Assembly: GCA_002104945.1 (NCBI GenBank)
Contig: MCFH01000011.1
Coordinates: forward strand, 372,001 to 436,000
Reading direction: 5' to 3'
Source: Piromyces finnis finn
Lineage: Eukaryota > Fungi > Neocallimastigomycota
Length of the DNA: 64,000 nt
Shown here in pieces: positions 23,140 to 61,167 of the stretch. The position numbers were made by a program, and so were the translations under genes. The first letter of the stretch is position 1. Every line of letters starts with the position of its first letter. Under the pieces are notes generated by a model that saw nothing but the letters and a program-made list of their open reading frames with translations, was not told the origin of the DNA and searched no databases.

Positions 23140-24100
23140 TTAAGAGTTACTTATGAATTAACTTTCTAGCTGATAAAAATATAGAATTCCCCTAGTTTTA
23201 CAACAATAATGAAACAATGATACATTAAAGCAAAGCATCATTATAATCAATTGGAATAATAGTAGCCTAAATAATGGAAGTAAAGTCCTCAGATATACTA
23301 ACAACAAATTCCTTAATTCAAATCGCCTAATGTATATCGGTCTCAACAAACCTCACTTAAATTTAGGAATTACCTGGATTATTCGTATTCGATGCGGTTA
23401 TGAATACACTACCCGAATTGCTATTGCCAGTAATAGAGTTACCCCTGACTGTCCTCGTGTCTGTCCATGTTGTGGATATGACGAACAATCTTTTTACCAT
23501 TGGATATTAGAATGTTCTGCATTCTCTGAATACAGAACTTCTTCACTTAGCTTTCTTGATGATCTTTTTACCCTTTTTTCAATAAATATAAGAATCAATT
23601 CATCACATACTTACTCCCTGAAATGGAAGTAAGAAAAACAATTTATAACAATATTTTTACGTTCCTTCTTGGTGGAACTTTAGCTTATGATGAGCTACAA
23701 ATCGATAAGGCGGAACAAAGACATTTGAATAAATAGCTTTACAGTTCATCGGGGTCTCATGCTCCATATATAGAGGGTCTCGCGGATTTTCTTACTATAA
23801 CAATCCCTATCATTAGTAGCTATATGAAGCTACTTTTTGATAGGTTTAGTAAGACACCTAACGTAATCAAGAGCGCCGACGTCGTACCGATATAGCAAAG
23901 GAACATTCTCAGTGTTCCGTACACAGGGTTCAATGTCAGTATTTCTTCGAATGAAAACATTATGAACTCATGGGAGAGTTTAGTGGACACCACACTATCA
24001 TACCTGATGTTACTTCTTTTTTTTTATTTCATTTAATTTATTAGGTAGGGACCAATCCCACACAGTACAAATTGCAGAGTTCATTGAACTTTTATGCAAC
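23140..24100 (+). mobile_element. Decayed 3' fragment of a second LINE family (family 2)
   Basis: WIIRIRCGYEYTTRIAIASNRVTPDCPRVCPCCGYDEQSFYHWILECSAFSEYR is homologous to the family-1 ORF2 C-terminal zinc finger. It is followed by a GC-richer 3' UTR and TATTT-rich sequence. Confidence 0.8.
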
Positions 24101-27100
24101 TTAAATAATTATTTTATATTATTTTATATTTATATTTTTATTTATATATATTTTATTATTTTTATTTATTATTTACTATATCAATATGTATTATCACAAA
24201 TTAAATAAATAAATAAATAAAAGATGTGTATTCTCTTCCTAGTCTAAAAAAAAAAAAATCATTATAATCATTATAGTATATTTACTCAAAGTCTATCCAT
24301 ATATATTCCCTATAGAATTGTAATATTCACTAGAAAAAGGAAAAGAAAAGACCAAACTATTTTCAAAAATTATATAAACAAACTATTAATGAATAAGTAT
24401 TTCTTATATACTTTATAAAACGTACGATTAATACAATATAGTATTAATAGATCTGTCATACAATAATAAAATTCTTTTAAAAGCATAATTTTTATCTTTT
24501 ATAATTGAAAAATATTATAAAATGAAAATTCATAATAAAATATTATTCTATTATTATTTATTTTCAAATATTATAAGAGTTAAGATATAAAATAATTTTT
24601 AGAATTATTTATATAATTAGATTATTTTCTCTTTAAAGGGTGGAGTCTTCATACAAACAAACAAAACAAAACAAAAAAACTAGGTATAAATTTAATCTCA
24701 TAATAAAATTGCAAATCTTTTTTTTTTTTTTGAAACAAAATTAAATTTTTTGAGAAACAAATATTTTTAATAAATTAAGATCTACTACTTTAATATATTA
24801 AATTTTTAAATGACTATGTTATTATTTTTTATTATTTAATATTTTTTCAATATAATTTTAACTTTGTTTATAAATATAATTATTCTAAAAAGAGTGAATC
24901 ATCATTTACTTCTTTAAATCTTATATATATTTTATGTCATTATAAACTAATAATATTTTTTAATATAATTATTGAAAAGTGGGTTTATACAAATTTATTT
25001 ATAAATGGTATATTTCATTTTTTTATTTAATGAAATGGGTATCTTAGTCAATGTTTTCTTTTAATAATAAAAATAATTAATTTAATTATTATTTGAACAC
25101 AACTCAATATTGAGATTATACCAAATAAATTTTGTAGTTACACTGATTTTAGTAATAAAATTTTTATGTAGGAAAATAAATTGTTAGAGAGGCATTTACT
25201 AAAGTGGATTCCCCAAAAAAAACTTTTTTGTAGCACCAATAATTTTTAAAATAATTCAAAAATGGTAATTATTAATAAAAACAAAAATAAAACTTTTAGT
25301 CGTTTGGTGAATATGCTTTTATAATTTATTGTAGTATTTTATTTATTTACAATAAATATAGAGACTGATGGCTAAATATAAAATTACTAAAAAAATAATA
25401 TTAAATAATTTATAATAATAATAATAATAATAATAAAGTAGTTTTTGTTTTATTGAATATAAAAAAAGAAGGGAGAAAATCAATTTTCTCCAAAAGCTAT
25501 TGGTGATGTTATAAGACTTAAGGATAACCCATAAATCATGTGATATGATATACAATATTATACATTTTTATTTTATGAATGTAATTAAATTTAAAATGTT
25601 TCAAAATATATAATAAATATTTTGTTGTATTTATACTTTTTTTTTTGTCTTAATATGGCTTAATAATATATATAATATTACTTTTATTTCACTTTTAAGC
25701 ATAATAATCTTTAATTATGAAACTCAATTTTTTTATTATTTTTAAAAACACAAAACTATACTAATATAATTAATATTTCTATGAAATATAATAATTTATT
25801 AATTATAATTACGAATAATATTAAATCTAATATAAATTTTTTTTATTTTTGTTTTATAATAAATTCTTTATAATATGTTATTTAATTATTTAATGTTTTC
25901 ATATGAAAACTAAAATAATAGAAAACTTATTTTTTAATCTAACATTTTAATACATATTACTATTATATATAATATAATATTAAACCAACATATTTATATA
26001 ATATTAATTAAAGTTTATCATTTTAATTAAAATTTAAATTAAATATTTTAGTATTGAAGTTTGAATAATATAAAATTACCAAAGAATATAAATATTCTCA
26101 ATACTCATAAAGGATTAATTAAATAATAAATTACAGAATAAAGGATAAAAAATTTAATAAAAAAAAAGACAACTCATTATTCTTTTAATAAGAAAACTAA
26201 TATTACTTAAGAAAATTAATAATAATAATACAATATATTTCTATAATTAAAAACGATAATAAGTTGATAAAACAAAACATAAAAATTATATTTTATTATA
26301 AAATATTATTAATTATTTTTTAAATTTTCTATTTTTCAATTTTATTGAACGATTGATTATTGGAAGGAAAAAATTAATGAGTACAGAAATGGTCCAATAA
26401 AAAGTAATTATAATATTTTATTATAAAATTAAGATGGAAAATAAAAAAAATTTAAAATTAATTAAAATTAAATTAAAGAAACATAGAAATTTATTTGATT
26501 TTTTAACCTAGTTGAAACACATTCTAATAAATAAACTTTTTAAATTTATATTATGAATGAAAGAATTATAGTAGGGCTAAAAGATATGAAACTATATTAT
26601 ATGATGGATCAATTATGTATAATTAAATGAGAAATGCAATTTTAAATGAATGATATACTTTCTTAATAGTTACTTTTATTTTTTAATTTGCTTAATAGAA
26701 CAAATAAATAAAATTAATAAAATTTTTCATTAAAATATTTATAAAAGTTAATTTATTCATTAGGAATAAAATATTTTTTATATCTATTTTTCTATAGTGT
26801 AAAAATAAACTTTTTGAAATAAACTTTTATTGCTGAAATAGTTTATTTTATTTTAATTTATGAGAATTGCCGTTTTTTCTATCTATTGAAAAAGAAGTTA
26901 ATATTATATTTTAATCATGTCATTTTTTTTTAGTTGTAACGACATAACTTGGCGGTTTTATAAATGTTTAAATTTAAAGAAAATACTTTAGAAATATCAT
27001 TATTTAAAAATACTCTTTCCTAGAAATAGGTAAAACAAATATATAATTGAAATAATAAAATAGATTATGAATATATATAACAATTTATATAAATTTATCA

Positions 27101-27344
27101 ATTTATATTTTAAATATATAGAAATAAAATATTTCATTATTTTATTTAATAATAAAGTTTAACATGGAAAATTTTATTTTATTCAACCAATAATATAAAA
27201 ACTATCCAATTTCAGATAATTAATTTAGAAACTTTTTTAATTTATATTATAACATTAATATTTGTGTAATAACATTTCTGTAATATTAAAAACTCTCCAA
27301 TTCTAAATTAATTTAATAATTTTTTTGTTGCAGTAATTGAATAA

Positions 27345-27383
<39 letters not shown>

Positions 27384-27384
27384 A
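27345..27384. repeat. (AAAT)n microsatellite
   Basis: About ten tandem AATA/AAAT units. Confidence 0.9.
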
Positions 27385-28512
27385 AAAGTTATTATTATAA
27401 TATGTTATATAATATTCTTTGGCCTATTTTATTTAAATACTAAGATATTTATCAAAGTGTTTGTAATTATATTTTTAATATGGAAATTCAATATTAAAGT
27501 ATTAAGTTTTATTAATATATTAATATTAAACCTTTATAATCAAAGTATTTCTTGTTTCATTACTATAAATTTTACTTTTTTTTTTTTTTAAATTATTAAT
27601 GAATTAACTTTTATTTATAAGTTTCAAAAGTATTTTTTTAAATAGGAGAATCTTATTCTATATTTAATTAGTAAACTTTATTTTAAATAAAATTTCTATT
27701 ACTTTTTTTCTATAATTTTGTTGAAACATTTAATTTTTTTATTCATTTAAAAATTTCAATATACCATAGACAAAAAAGGAAATTACATAATATAAAACTT
27801 TAATTAATATAAAATTGGATTATAATCTGTCATATCAAATTAATTCATATTCTATGAAATATATTTCATTTATATTATAATATTAACTCAAAATTTTATT
27901 AGTACAAATTATTATTTCTAATATATTAATACTAAATAGTGTGATATATTATTATAAAATAGTAATAATAAAATCATATAACATTATATTAAATTTATAT
28001 TCAAAACATCTTTCATATAAAATTACACTAATTATTTTTGTTATATTAATATATTAATAATAAATTTATTCAATTATTTATGTTTAATACTAGTAAACTT
28101 TAATATTTAGTGTTTTAATAATTTATATTAGTTAATTAGTATTATTCCAAAAATTTTTTATTTCAAAATATTATATTTAATAAAATTATATTAAAATAAT
28201 AAAAAAAGTATCATAAAAAGTTAAATTAAAATTATTAATAATATAATTGTAAAACGGTAGTAATATAAAATGAAAGCTATTTTACCAAAGAAATAAAAAA
28301 ATTTTTTTTTAAAGTAATAATAATAATAATAAAAAAAAAAAAAATATATATATATAAGTTATTAAATAAAAGTTCAAGAAGAAAATAGAAATTTGTTTAA
28401 TATTATAATATTAAATATTTTTGAATTAATTTAATTTTTATTTAAAACTTTTAATAAAAAAGAAACTTTGTAATATATATATATAAAACAATAAAATAAT
28501 ATTAAAATTAAA

Positions 28513-29915
28513 ATGAAATACATTCATACTCTTGGACTTTTATTAGCTTCCACTTTAATTGTAAGTAACGTTGAAGCTGCTTATCCAAAATGTTCTGATT
28601 GTATTGTTTTCGCCACTGGTAAGGATGGTTCTCTTTGGGGTTGGGAAAATGAATCTTTTTGTAGAATTTCAAAGAAATGTTATTCCACTACTACTAAGAA
28701 AGTAAAAACTTCAACAAAAAAAACTACTAAAAAAACTACTACTAAAAAGCTTACTACTAAAAAGCTTACTACTAAAAAGACAAAGGTTACTGCTAATGTA
28801 GCAACCGAAGTTGCTCCAACCACTACTATTCCAGCTACTATTCCACCAGCTCCAATTAAAACTAGCGGTCCACATCAAACTAATGCTCGTGGTCAAATGA
28901 TTTGTAATGCTTGTACTGTTACTGCTACAGGTGGTGACAATTCTTTATGGGGATATGAAGATGATAAGGTAAAGTTTCATTATTAAATAAATTATAAATT
29001 TTATATCAAAAAAATAAAAAAAAAGTTAGTGAAAAAAAATTATGAAAATTACTTGTTTTTTGAAAAGATTGCAAACTTTTTTATTGTTATAATATTATTA
29101 AGAAGACTTTTAATTAGGAATTAGTATATAAATTATATCGAATTATCAAATTATACTTAGTTAATAAATTTTTTATTCTTAATAATAAAAGTCATGTGTT
29201 ATTGATGAAGTTAGATGTAATGTCAAGTCTGCTACTGAAACAGCTCCACCACCAAATGATGTAGCTCTTGCAAATCACCAAAAAGATGGATCAGGTAACT
29301 TAATTTGCAATGGATGTAATGTTACTGAAACTGGTGGTGACCAATCTCTTTGGGGTTATGAAGATAATGCAGTATGTATTTTAATGAAATAAAGGAAATA
29401 ATTAATAAGAAATTAAAAATATTTTTAGTATATAATATTTTAAAATAAAATTAATAACTAATGAATTATAACATTATTACAATATAATTATTTTATAGTC
29501 TTGTATCATTGATAGAGTAAAATGTAAATTAGAAGCACCAAAAAAAAATAAGGATGATGGTATACCAATTTGTGATACATGTGTAGCTCTTGAAACTCAT
29601 TCTGATACTACTCTTTGGAACTATGAAAATGGTAAAGCATGTAGAGTTATTGGTTCTCGCTGTAATATCAATTCAACTCCTTACTCATGGTGTAAGGGTT
29701 GTGTCGTTACTGAATATGGTGGTGATGGTGCTGCATTTGGTTGGGAAAATGAACAATCTTGCCTTGTTAATGAACAATCATGTGGTTATGTTGATAAATT
29801 TGGTAAGCCATTTGGAGAAGCAGTTGATGAATCTGGTGATGCTTATTCCCAAAAAATTGGAATGGGAATTGCTATTACATCCTTAATTGGTCTTATTATT
29901 GCAATTGCTTTTTAA
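28513..29915 (+). CDS. Secreted protein with five fungal dockerin (CBM10/NCDD) modules, Lys/Thr-rich linker and C-terminal GPI-like signal; exons 28513-28968, 29192-29371, 29499-29915
   Basis: Signal peptide MKYIHTLGLLLASTLIVSNVEA, then five repeats of C-x2-C-x-V-x3-[GS]-x-D-x2-[LF]-[WG]-x-[WY]-E-x4-C-x6-7-C. It ends ESGDAYSQKIGMGIAITSLIGLIIAIAF*. Both introns are phase 0 at the same position within a dockerin module. Confidence 0.9.
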
Positions 29916-30494
29916 ATAGAGTAATTTATTAAAAAATAAGTTAAATATTTGGAAATTGATTTTTATATTTTTATTAAAAAATTTAAAAATATATTTATAA
30001 ATGATAGATTAATTTTAATCAAGTTTAAAATAAAAAGCTTTTTTTTTTCTTATAATTATATTTTATTAATATATATAAGAAATAATTTTAAAATTAATAT
30101 TATTTTAAGATAATATATATATAAAGTAAAATATATAGTTTATTTTAATGTATGAAAATAAAAATAAGAAAAAAAAAATTATTATGTAGATATTATATAA
30201 AAAGTAATATATATAGATGATAATATTGAATATTGAGTATTCAAATTATTATCTACTAAAATGAAAATTAATAAACAGTTAAAAAACAAAGTCTAAAACA
30301 AAACATTTAAAAAGGTTTATATGTTAACAATAGCAGATATTTTTTACCTGAAAATCTGGCAGAGGTTGAACTTCTTCTAGCTAAAATTTTTGGCTAAATC
30401 TACCAAAAATCTAGGATAAATATTAATATATTAAGAAAGGAGGTTGTCCATTTTCTCCAATTATTTTTAATTTCTTTTTTTTTTTTTTAAATGA

Positions 30495-52784: not shown

Positions 52785-55533
52785 ATGAATCTACGGTATA
52801 TGAAATTTATTTATACTAGCCTAATATTGGTATATCTTTCAACAAAAGCATTTTCACAAACTACAAATGATGTAACGATCTTTAATATTCTAGTGGATAT
52901 ACCCGATATAATAAATAAAGATCTCTATGAAAATGCCTACAAAGAAATGGAAAAAAAAGAATATAATAAGGATAATTTGAATTTTAAAATTAAATTTAAA
53001 ATATCAGAGGAACCAAAAGATAAAACTACTAAGGATGGTTATGAAAAATATATTAAATCTATATTAGATAATCTTGAAGATTCTTCAATCGATTTTTTAA
53101 TATTAAGTGATAGTTTTTTATATAGTGACATAGCTAATATAGAAAGTACTACTTTAAAGGATATGTTTTCGAAAAGACAATTCCAAAGACATTATTTAGA
53201 CTTTAAAGAATTTTTAAATTTTAATGAAACTAGATTAGCCAATTACGAACAAGAAATAAAAGAAGATTGCTATTTTAACAATTACAGTAATATTTTTGCC
53301 TTACCATACGAAATTGATTTTGATGTATTATATTATAGAAAATATAATAATAGTGTGACATCTAATATTGATACAAATAATATAAATTGGGAGAGTTTAT
53401 TAGAACAAATTTATATAAAAAATGGAGAAAAAAAATCGATAAAGATGCCACTTAAAGAAGAAGAAGAATTATTTGATTTTTTTACCCAATATATTAATAC
53501 AATTAAAAATTTTAAAGAAAAGAAAAGTTTTGAAGATTTATATAATGAAGCTGACACTTCCATAATTGATAAATTTAGGGATTTTGTAACAAGATCCGAA
53601 TGTTTAAATTTGGAATATAAAGAAGCGTATGAATCTTTTTTAAATGGTGAAAGTGTATTTTTTAAAGGAAAAGCTTCTCATTTTGGTAGTTTGAGAGGAA
53701 AAGATAAAGCAATTACACCTATGTTATTACCACAAAATAAAGGTATTCTTCATACAAAATATATTGTAATTAATAAAAACAGTAGTAAAGATAAAAATGA
53801 ACTTTTTACAGCTGCCCAAACTCTTACAGATGATGAAAATCAAATGGAGAGGTATAATTTATATCAAATATTACCACCTAATTTTGGTCAGTTAGAAAAT
53901 AATGATTATTCAGATATTGTGAATATTTATTCAAAAATGGAAAAAATTAAAGTCAAGGAAATATATAAGGATGAAAAAAGTGCACCATTTATGGAAGTTA
54001 AATATTTTTTACCAAAAATATTAAAAGATTTTTTAAATAGTAAGGGTGATATTAAAGAAATCCAAAATGTTTTTGAAAATATCAAAAAGATATTAAAGGA
54101 AAAAAGAGGAATTCATAAACTTCCATACTATGTCATTTACCTTCCGGCAATTATATCTACTGTAGCAGCAGTCGTCATCATTTATTTAATTTTAAAGTAT
54201 AAAGAACATCCATATTTAAAAATTTATTCCCCAAATTTCTGTGTTATTATAATAGTAGGAATGACAATTGGTATTCTTAGTTTATGTGCAACATTTAATA
54301 ATGATAATAATAAATATTGTAAGGTTAGTTATGTTGTCGATACTTTATCAACTGATTTAACTCTATTTCCAATGGTAGCCGTAACCTATCGTATTTATAA
54401 GATATTAACAAATACCAGTAAAGAAAATGTTGGAATAAATTTGAATCGTCGTATCATTATATGTTTCGTTGTTGGTTTATCATTAATGATTATATATTCC
54501 TCTTGTACAGGTTTCTTTATTTTAGATTTCTATTTAAGTTCTGATGGTAATATAACAAACTTCCGTCAACCTTCCTGTAATTATAGTTCTGATTTATATA
54601 TATTAGAAAGTGTAGAACGTAGAATTAATGAAGTTATTGTAAGTATACATAAAAATTATATAAGTGTTATATAAAATAAATGGTCGTCTCTTTCTGTATA
54701 ACTAACACAAATTAATATTTTTATCATAGTACTTATTTTTAGTCTATATGGTTTTCAGAACTGCAAAGATATCAAAGAGATTTGGAGAATTTAAATATGT
54801 TTATATTATGTTATTTATTGGTATTTTAGAATATGCCAGGTATTATTTAGTTAAAATCATTCCACAACAATCTTATTATTACTCTTATCTTGCCATTATT
54901 TCCTGTAGTGTTTTAATGAATGGATTGCTTATTTACTTTTTAATTGGATCACGTTTATACTATGCCATTCAACACTCTGACGAAATTAGAAAAAAAGAAA
55001 CAACTCAAGGATTTGAAACCAATAGTTATTTTAATACCTTAAATAATGGACTAGATGACACTACAAATAATGACGGTATGCATAGTCATTTTATTGACAT
55101 TAGTAAAAACAGTGAATCACGTATGAATTCCTTTTCCTTCAACAAAAGTTATTCTAACAAACATTATAATCTTTCCTCAAACACGACTATATCAGAATTT
55201 GATTGTTGTTATGACAGTAATAATAATATATTTAATCAAGGATTTAATAGTTATAATGATTTTGGTAAAAATCAACTTTCATCCAATACCACCCCACGTA
55301 ATGATTACTATAATTCTACCAGTGCTCTTCTCAATCAAGATACCTATAGTAGTCAAAAAACTGTTGGATCTCAGGATTCTCAACAAAATTGTAACGTTAT
55401 CAATTTATTAAAAAATGGATCCACCTCGAACCTATCTAATGCACCAAATGTTTCATTTGACATAACAAATAAAAGTAGTAATCAACTTATTAATAGTAGT
55501 AGTAACAATATAAAAAGTAAGAATCAAAAGTAA
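52785..55533 (+). CDS. Class C-like GPCR with N-terminal bacterial-type solute-binding (SBP) ectodomain and long Asn/Ser-rich tail; exons 52785-54638, 54730-55533
   Basis: Signal peptide; FALPYEIDFDVLYYRK resembles SBP family 1; seven hydrophobic segments start at YYVIYLPAIIST; PYLKIYSPNFCVIIIVG resembles the class C TM1-TM2 junction. Phase-0 GT-AG intron. Confidence 0.85.
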
Positions 55534-58888: not shown

Positions 58889-61167
58889 ATGAAATATTTT
58901 TCAAAAATTGTTTTACAAAGTGCATTACTGGTTTTATCTGCTAGAGCTCTGCCAGTAACTCCACAAAAAAATAAAGTAATAAAGATTTTAACAGATAAAC
59001 CAGATAGTATTATTGCTACAAAATGGAATGACTATTGTTCATCAATAAAAAATTTTTTCACTACTACCGAAGCTGAAAATCTTCTTCTTCATGAATATGA
59101 TATTGATTTTACTTTCAATTACGATGAACTTTATGATAAAAAGAGTACTAATAGTTATGAAACATACTTAAATTCTATTATTAAAGAATTGAAAGAAAAT
59201 AATTATGATATGATGATATTAGATGATAAATTCCTATTCTCTGAAAATGCATATATACAAAGTCAATATATTGATAGTACTTTTGGTAAAAATATTCATA
59301 ATGAATACCTAGATTTAACATCTGATATTAATAAGGATTCTCTTTCCTTCCATGATTCAAAAATCCTTAGTGATGGTTACTACGACAATCATTTATATGC
59401 TATTCCATTTGAAAAAGATTTTGATGTCATTTTTTATCGTAATGATAATGCTAGTTTTGGAAATGTTAATATGATTAATGTCTCTTGGGATGATTTAGTT
59501 AATATCAATACTGAGGCTTCTGTCAATAAGTTAAGTGTTCCTCTTGGTAATAGTGATGAATTACTTCACCTCTTTATCGAATACGCTAATGAAAAAATTG
59601 ATTTATCCGGAAACAACAAAGAATCCAACTATGAAAAATTATACAACCAAAATTCTAAAGATATATTTAACTCATTTAGCTCTTTCGTTACTAAATTTGG
59701 AACCAATATAACTTCAGAAATCACTTTTATAGATGCCTATGAAACCTTTATTAACGGAAAAAGTAGTGTATTTAAGGGTAAAGCTTCACATTATCACGCC
59801 ATATTGAATACACCAAATGGTAAAAATGTTATGATGCAATTACCCCCAAAGAATACCAGTATTATCAATAATAAGTATATTGTTATTAACAAGAATAGTT
59901 TATTAGATAAGAAGGTTCTCATTGAAGCTGCAAAAAGACTTACTTCCAAGGAAATGCAATTATACAAGGCCGAACAATTTGGAAAAATACCAACTTTTGA
60001 TATGACTCAAAGAGATAGTGATCCATCCATTAAAACTTACTCTGAAAAAAATCCAGAACTTCTTAATATTATAAGTAAAATCATTCCACTTCACCTTAAA
60101 GATATTTTCAAGAGTGAATTTAGTGCACCATTTATGGAAGTTAGAATTCTTCTTCCACAAGACATTAGAAAGTATTTAAAAGAAAAAAATAATAATGACC
60201 TCTCCAATGTTATTGAAAATATTAAAATGTTATTAATGGATAAATCAAATGTTATACATTTCCCCACCTATCTTTTATACGCTCCAATAATTATATTTAC
60301 TCTATTGGCTATTATTGTAGTCATTTTAATTTTCAAATATAGAAATTATTCATGTTTGAAGATTTTCTCACCGGGTTTCTGTATTCTCAGTATTATTGGT
60401 ATTATCATGAGTATTATTCATCCAATGATTTCTATGGAAAATACTAATCCAAATGTATGTAAATACCTTTACATCTACGAAACTATTTTCACCGATTTAA
60501 CCCTTTTCCCAATGGTGGCAGTTACCTATCGTCTTTACACTATCTATAGTAGTAAAGCTAAGGATAATAAAATTAAGCATTTAAATACTCGAATTAACAT
60601 CTTTTTCATTATTGCTATGTTAATTATGGTTTTCTATTCTGCAGCCGTTTCACTTTTCATTTTGAATTTCTACTTCCACTCCTATGGTACAATTGATACT
60701 TATCGTCAACAAGTTTGTACATACAGTGATAATGGTATTTTTGAATCTATTGAACGTAGAGTCAATGAATTAATTGTAAGTATTTAAGGTAATATCCTTT
60801 TAATATATATATGTATATATAGTCATATTAAATCCCCCCCTTTTTTTTTATTTTAATTATTATCTATATATAAAATTAGTATATTGTTATGATTGTTTTA
60901 ATTGTCAGGACTGGAAAAGTTTGTAAAAAGTATGGTGCATTCAAATACATATATATTATGTTTTGTATTGGTATCATGGAATACGCCTTCAATTTCATTT
61001 TAAATTATTTACCAACTAATGGTTATTTCGGATTCTATTTAATTAGTATTATTATAAAAACTGTATTAAATGGACTTTTAATCTATTATTTAGTTGGTTC
61101 AAGATTAATATATGTTATCAAACACAGGAATAATGCTGACAATTTAAATTATGAAGAATTATTATAG
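58889..61167 (+). CDS. Second SBP-GPCR paralogue with very short cytoplasmic tail; exons 58889-60775, 60880-61167
   Basis: Collinear with the first (YAIPFEKDFDVIFYRN, FKGKASHY, SAPFMEVR, TDLTLFPMVAVTYR, ESIERRVNELI|Y), with the intron at the same position. Confidence 0.85.

Follow-up and report, generated by a model that had tools for sequence, protein, structure and literature searches.

Positions 28513-29915 (+) of the 64,000-nucleotide stretch of DNA analyzed here (the window; C13:372001-436000 of the Piromyces finnis assembly, which comprises 56.46 Mb in 232 contigs) hold an intact three-exon gene. It almost certainly specifies a protein with a signal peptide, five modules, no enzyme and a GPI-type tail. 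A surface-anchored poly-dockerin that binds or cross-links scaffoldins is our overall explanation of this protein, put forward tentatively and at a level that falls short of probable.

The reading frame starts with the ATG at 28513 and ends with the TAA at 29913-29915. Exon 1 (28513-28968 (+); aa 1-152) encodes the signal peptide (28513-28578; residues 1-22, judged by eye), module 1 (28582-28680; residues 24-56, with a Pfam CBM_10 match at residues 23-51), a Thr/Lys/Pro-rich linker (28681-28893; 71 residues, among them 23 Thr, 15 Lys and 6 Pro) and, up to the end of the exon, the first half of module 2 (28894-28968). Intron 1 (28969-29191 (+); 223 nt, GTAAAG..AG, phase 0, GC 0.13) interrupts module 2 after the W-G-Y-E-D-D-K strand. 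Exon 2 (29192-29371 (+); aa 153-212) contributes the second half of module 2, a linker and the first half of module 3, where intron 2 (29372-29498 (+); 127 nt, GTATGT..AG, phase 0, GC 0.09) follows at the identical within-module position. The first part of exon 3 (29499-29831 (+); aa 213-323) comprises the end of module 3, module 4 (29562-29663; residues 234-267), module 5 (29682-29783; residues 274-307) and a short stalk. The remainder is the GPI-type C-terminal signal (29832-29915 (+)), made up of S324-G325-D326-A327 (29832-29843), the spacer YSQKIG (29844-29861), the tail (29862-29912) and TAA. GC content is about 0.30 in the exons, against the 0.13 and 0.09 of the introns and 0.10-0.16 in the intergenic DNA of the window. 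Translated separately, the three exons are identical to the public record BCR36DRAFT_322619 (350 aa, 'CBM10 domain-containing protein') over residues 1-152, 153-212 and 213-350, respectively; this record was used for all whole-protein analyses.

BCR36DRAFT_322619 carries five four-cysteine CBM10/fungal-dockerin modules (residues 24-56, 128-161, 188-221, 234-267 and 274-307). Its 20 cysteines fall into five sets of four with the spacing C-x2-C-x19-C-x5/6-C, and they are invariant or nearly so in the family alignment. Pfam CBM_10 (PF02013) is the sole family match, scoring 56.4 bits for the whole protein against a cut-off of 23, with 30 bits for exon 1 alone and 23.8 bits for exon 3 alone; the same search returned no catalytic domain and no cohesin. 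The start reads M-K, an h-region and V-E-A followed by A at residue 23, a layout kept in the family alignment. In addition, the protein has four N-glycosylation sequons, and the linkers besides the 71-residue one are short. At the C-terminus, the small residues S324/G325-D-A and the 6-residue spacer YSQKIG lead into a hydrophobic run of 17 residues that ends at the stop codon. The flanks at 27000-28500 and 29916-30250 have a GC content of 0.10-0.16 and contain no ORFs, which leaves no space where a catalytic exon could lie. The observation in the original prediction, drawn from the DNA letters, is thus confirmed against the gene model. Its coordinates are exact from ATG through TAA, its five dockerin modules with linkers correspond to the 5 x 4 cysteines and the CBM_10 score, and its signal peptide fits the by-eye reading of residues 1-22. 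Likewise, its ESGDA site followed by a hydrophobic tail without cytoplasmic residues is found as E-S-G-D-A, YSQKIG, 17 hydrophobic residues and stop, and the absence of a catalytic domain, and of space for one, is borne out by the lone Pfam family and the ORF-free, AT-rich flanks.

Exon 2 forms a symmetric phase 0-0 cassette of half a module, a linker and half a module, with similar contexts at both junctions. Because these junctions are alike, skipping or duplication of the exon would shift the module number by one while preserving the frame and whole modules. Gain or loss of this cassette may be the source of four- and five-module relatives, and alternative splicing of exon 2 is conceivable.

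Elsewhere in the window, a 100-aa ORF about 5 kb upstream of the gene (23330-23632 (+)) has a Cys/His knuckle-like motif of the kind commonly seen at the C-terminus of ORF2 proteins from non-LTR retrotransposons; the ORF is probably a retroelement remnant. Two further ORFs of about 630 aa (52785-54671 (+) and 58889-60784 (+)) combine a domain resembling bacterial solute-binding proteins (SBP_bac_8, below cut-off) with a class C 7TM domain, for which the 7tm_3 scores are 36.7 bits (above the cut-off of 33.5) and 26.8 bits (below it). They look like the unusual class C GPCR-like receptors of gut fungi.

A protein search with BCR36DRAFT_587119, the paralog on contig C193 (317 aa), as query gathered about 28 relatives of 300-377 aa from genomes of Piromyces, Neocallimastix and Anaeromyces and from metagenome and transcriptome contigs. 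All those found come from anaerobic gut fungi or rumen-type metagenomes, and CBM_10 is their sole Pfam family. In the family alignment, the signal peptide is followed by module 1, a linker rich in Thr, Ser and Lys, the middle modules (one or two), modules 4-5, a short stalk and the tail. The tandem modules 4 and 5 are the best conserved part and almost invariant, with a mean pairwise identity of 0.76-0.77; it is 0.64-0.71 for modules 1-3 and 0.25-0.37 for linkers, stalk and tail (tail 0.29). Small residues (S-S-A, S-G-A or S-A-A) precede the hydrophobic end. In a maximum-likelihood tree, the window protein belongs to a clade with 100/100 support and BCR36DRAFT_587119 to another one, while members from Neocallimastix lanati occur in two clades.

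P. finnis itself has two paralogs built to the same plan, one with four modules and the other with two. BCR36DRAFT_587119 is intronless and has four modules, with a start and a tail of the same kind. The other gene (C222:1028831-1029857), found by a module-profile search of the P. finnis genome, encodes a signal peptide and two modules separated by a Ser/Asn-rich linker; D-S-G-A-S and a hydrophobic end come after a stalk of about 30 residues. Its exon 1, used as a word-search query, gave mostly low-complexity candidates, which were discarded. Both paralogs resemble the window gene in the order of the parts and the kind of tail, but differ from it in module number (four and two) and linker composition (Ser/Asn-rich). 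The architecture that the original prediction proposed to count across gut fungi is thus present in about 28 relatives and two P. finnis paralogs. The single intron of the C222 gene lies after W-G-W-E-x-x-x and before S/T-C, in phase 0. This within-module position is common to both introns of the window gene, the C222 gene and the Anaeromyces ortholog; the sequence of a metagenome ortholog of the C222 gene reads into an intron at the same place.

The end of the reading frame could be examined on transcripts of the Anaeromyces robustus ortholog. Four contigs from public runs contain an uninterrupted frame of 315 aa, which in the genome is broken by an intron of about 477 nt; therefore, these contigs represent spliced mRNA. 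They measure about 1.2-1.7 kb, the longest one being 1662 nt with a GC content of 0.09 and 0.06 in its UTRs, and they have no coding part besides this ORF. Orthologs in the window protein's own clade have the same stop position. We considered a hidden exon after the tail and rejected it: no usable donor precedes the stop, and the orthologs and spliced mRNA contigs end at the same place, which argues against a concealed catalytic or cytoplasmic exon. A catalytic exon in the transcripts, named beforehand as an observation that would overturn the dockerin-only reading, does not appear in the spliced contigs of this ortholog of the window gene.

Upstream of the window gene lies a perfect 20-nt AT palindrome, TTTAATATTATAATATTAAA (28396-28415), which starts 117 nt before the ATG. 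It has three copies in the 56.5-Mb genome, and a reversed-pattern control gave one match. One of the other copies (C193:73942-73961) is located 152 nt upstream of the start codon of BCR36DRAFT_587119; the third (C1:2137129-2137148) has no gene nearby. One ortholog contig contains the palindrome with one mismatch, within a conserved upstream block of about 130 nt. In Neocallimastix and Anaeromyces, it occurs only as versions with three mismatches, at about the background rate. Given this placement, the palindrome is a candidate cis-regulatory element shared by the two larger anchor-type genes.

That the window protein is held at the surface by its C-terminal signal is very probable. As an inference, anchoring is well supported because the whole design is kept in about 28 relatives and two paralogs, and the membrane step because a hydrophobic C-terminal signal is present in nearly all members and three paralogs. 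A GPI-type anchor is likely, with somewhat less assurance than surface attachment as such. The tail is hydrophobic in all full-length members, and the layout is of the GPI type in nearly all of about 26 full-length relatives, even though the tail sequence itself is poorly conserved. The predicted disorder around the attachment site in an AlphaFold2 model likewise speaks for GPI. A rule-based fungal GPI pattern, applied here in a strict form, matches the window protein and its clade and fails for the clade whose members end in R-G-F. The genes for a GPI transamidase are present in P. finnis above the Pfam cut-offs, namely Peptidase_C13 (C161; Gpi8-like or legumain by its Pfam match), Gaa1 (C163) and Gpi16 (C79).

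Alternatively, the C-terminus may not be exchanged for GPI but remain as a single membrane-spanning helix of a type I protein with zero or three cytoplasmic residues. An AlphaFold2 model renders residues 329-349 as one helix, and many relatives end in R-G-F, R-A-L or R-R-F past the hydrophobic run, which fits the positive-inside rule; the R-G-F-type relatives are also those that fail the strict end-of-protein pattern. The R-G-F clade could be read equally well as having a membrane helix with a three-residue tail. Nonetheless, the hydrophobic cores across the family, about 14-20 residues, are short for a plasma-membrane helix, conservation of small residues (S, G, A, D) at a distance of 6-10 residues upstream resembles that of GPI sites, and there is essentially no cytoplasmic part. 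Moreover, known GPI signals tolerate charge near the end. A retained helix is therefore considered unlikely. Even less likely is a soluble protein, shed or never anchored, that acts as a non-catalytic adaptor within the cellulosome by cross-linking scaffoldins or competing with enzymes. Five modules on flexible linkers would suit cross-linking, and non-catalytic dockerin proteins are reportedly a known class of cellulosome-associated proteins, but the conserved hydrophobic C-terminal signal in nearly all members and three paralogs speaks against a free protein.

The modules of the window gene belong to a subtype with the signature C-x-x-C ... T-G-G-D-x-S-L-W-G-W-E ... C ... C, which differs from the canonical fungal dockerin subtype Y-P-C-C ... 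W-G-V-E-N. Structural evidence nevertheless relates them to dockerins. For the AlphaFold2 model, which used the family alignment as input, pLDDT averages 74; it reaches 85-95 in the five modules and drops below 50 at residues 60-113, and the long linker and residues 320-335 are disordered. In a Foldseek search against the PDB, only the two best hits stand out from the noise, namely the P. equi dockerins 2J4M (probability 0.89), which is the double dockerin of Cel45A, and 1E8P (rmsd 1.7 A over 36 residues). Similarly, VIA-align places 2J4M on residues 231-308, i.e., on modules 4 and 5 as a pair (Z 4.3, rmsd 4.8 A, 73 residues aligned), and no other chain reaches Z >= 2. The structural match of the modeled modules 4-5 to 2J4M, the only one for any part of the model in this comparison, is modest. 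ESM Atlas offered no usable neighbor other than dockerin-bearing enzymes. At the sequence level, the whole protein as a query against the PDB gave only a low-complexity linker match, and module profiles were used instead. A profile of 13 modules detects 2J4M with an E value of 9e-4 and coverage of the entire module. Matches of the module profile to a Photorhabdus lectin were dismissed as spurious, being sums of 12-residue matches to propeller blades. A single module has one match among the PDB sequences, the bacterial cellulose-binding CBM10 1E8R (E 0.3, half a module), which runs through the common W-G-W-E-D-x-x-S-C core.

The distribution of the subtype over the genome bears on its ligand from two sides. 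A module-profile search of the P. finnis genome yielded about ten loci with strong matches to the C-x-x-C subtype, including the three anchor-type genes and a GH45 cluster on C57. The C57 enzyme, GH45 by Pfam, has two C-x-x-C modules at its N-terminus, and a GH5 on C178 (1313-1316 kb) has two together with a CBM1. Two GH5 genes on C135 (722-731 kb) encode four to eight C-x-x-C modules and then C-terminal canonical Y-P-C-C double dockerins. The placement on enzymes where dockerins normally sit, the co-occurrence with CBM1 and the 2J4M matches favor a dockerin role. On the other hand, a role in carbohydrate binding is favored by the presence of canonical dockerins on the same GH5 enzymes and by the Trp-x-Trp/Tyr pair that most of the modules have kept. 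Since the C135 GH5 enzymes bear both CBM10 subtypes, these may have different jobs and partners. Scaffoldin is the most likely ligand of the window protein, estimated at just under an even chance; cellulose or the plant wall seems rather doubtful as its target, and some other ligand slightly more so.

The second of these options would make the modules carbohydrate-binding CBM10s, and the protein a surface-anchored multivalent adhesin that attaches zoospores or rhizoids to cellulose or the plant wall independently of scaffoldins. The only PDB sequence match of a single module, the cellulose-binding 1E8R, points in this direction but is weak and covers half a module. In the CBM10 of Cellvibrio Xyn10A, the binding face is a planar strip of Tyr8, Trp22 and Trp24. 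Equivalents of the two Trp residues are present in modules 1, 2, 3 and 5, in which the Trp-x-Trp/Tyr pair is kept across the family, yet an equivalent of Tyr8, the third aromatic of that face, was not located in the modules. Module 4, one of the two most conserved, retains only the first aromatic and has lost the second. The C135 GH5 enzymes, which have the C-x-x-C subtype besides canonical dockerins, fit a separate carbohydrate-binding task, whereas such a task would be redundant in the C178 GH5 with its CBM1. The literature is divided as well. Fungal dockerins raised the amount of a fungal expansin-like protein bound to cellulose nanofibrils from 54 to 216 ng/cm2, a gain of about four-fold (2026, PMC12954947), but earlier studies of dockerin-bearing fungal xylanases and a mannanase found no cellulose affinity (cited in PMC12954947). 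The cellulose adhesin, offered as an alternative in the original prediction, consequently gains some support from the CBM10 aromatic pair in four of the five modules and loses some through module 4. Taken by itself it is rather doubtful, and still nearly as likely as the scaffoldin tether. The interpretation in the original prediction is thus borne out in part: the architecture is right and surface anchoring well supported, while the reversed-polarity scaffoldin tether is one of two ligand hypotheses of comparable likelihood.

For the tether, published work on the gut-fungal surface provides the setting. Dockerin signal is intense on zoospores and rhizoids, scaffoldins occur with and without transmembrane anchors of their own, and the mode of cellulosome attachment could not be addressed in that study (Lillington et al. 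2021, PMC8262932). As some scaffoldins are self-anchored, not every case of anchoring requires the window protein, but it could serve those that lack an anchor. The P. finnis surface images rely on an anti-dockerin antibody directed at a 15-mer from the canonical subtype (PMC8262932, Table S1), a peptide that has little in common with the modules of the window protein; the images are therefore probably uninformative on this protein. A full-text literature search linking GPI with fungal dockerins or CBM10 returned unrelated reviews only and no open paper on such a protein. Likewise, we found no published binding test of the C-x-x-C subtype against scaffoldin in the open literature.

In the mechanism that we propose for the scaffoldin tether, the protein would enter the ER, after which the GPI transamidase (Gpi8-like, Gaa1 and Gpi16) would exchange the tail for GPI at S324 or G325, and the product would be exposed at the plasma membrane or wall. 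About 17 residues would then separate the anchor from the highly conserved double module 4-5, with module 1 at the far end of a stalk that is probably O-glycosylated. Acting as dockerins, the modules would bind repeated cohesin-like sites of scaffoldins. Through such contacts, the multivalent anchored protein could retain or cross-link cellulosomes at the surface of zoospores or rhizoids, above all where the scaffoldin has no membrane anchor. Some points weigh against it. Since module 5 is only about 17 residues away from the anchor site, modules 4-5 would be buried in a walled cell; in the C222 gene, the stalk that precedes this site has about 30 residues. Moreover, published binding and antibody studies dealt with the canonical dockerin, which is of another subtype than these modules. 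More doubtful still is the broader proposal that GPI-anchored poly-dockerins with five, four and two modules constitute the missing link between cellulosome and cell across Neocallimastigomycota, possibly co-regulated through the palindrome.

As a tether, the protein would show that gut fungi have solved anchoring with a polarity opposite to that of bacteria, and it would offer a natural part for yeast surface display of fungal-type cellulosomes; as an adhesin, it would inform how zoospores attach to plant fiber. In either case, counts of 'dockerins' in gut-fungal genomes take in CBM10 modules of a distinct C-x-x-C subtype, and the family supplies a short, conserved and easily expressed candidate for a cell-surface hold on cellulosomes or cellulose.

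Among known systems, the double dockerin of P. equi Cel45A (2J4M/2J4N, 1E8P) is closest in its modules: it belongs to the same Pfam family, shares the small disulfide-rich beta fold and aligns with modules 4-5. The modules of the window gene, by contrast, number five, are spread over linkers, are free of an enzyme and sit on a carrier with a GPI-type tail. The CBM10 of Cellvibrio xylanase A (1E8R/1QLD) is a member of the same Pfam family too and has the W-G-W-E-D-x-x-S-C core in common, but the N-terminal half of the module differs (C-x-x-C in the fungal protein) and the similarity is marginal (E 0.3). In overall layout, fungal GPI-anchored adhesins and wall proteins such as the Als, Flo and Sed1 types of yeast are similar, with binding modules and a glycosylated region rich in Ser and Thr besides a signal peptide and a C-terminal GPI signal; they show no homology, the binding modules of the window protein are CBM10/dockerins, and its Thr-rich stalk lies between modules 1 and 2 and not beside the anchor. 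In its proposed role, inferred here, the window protein would resemble SdbA, OlpB and Orf2p of Acetivibrio thermocellum as a non-catalytic, cell-held fastener of cellulosomes. However, it contains neither an SLH domain, a sortase motif nor a cohesin and has no sequence relationship to these proteins, and the polarity is opposite: the bacterial proteins present cohesins, while the window protein presents dockerins.
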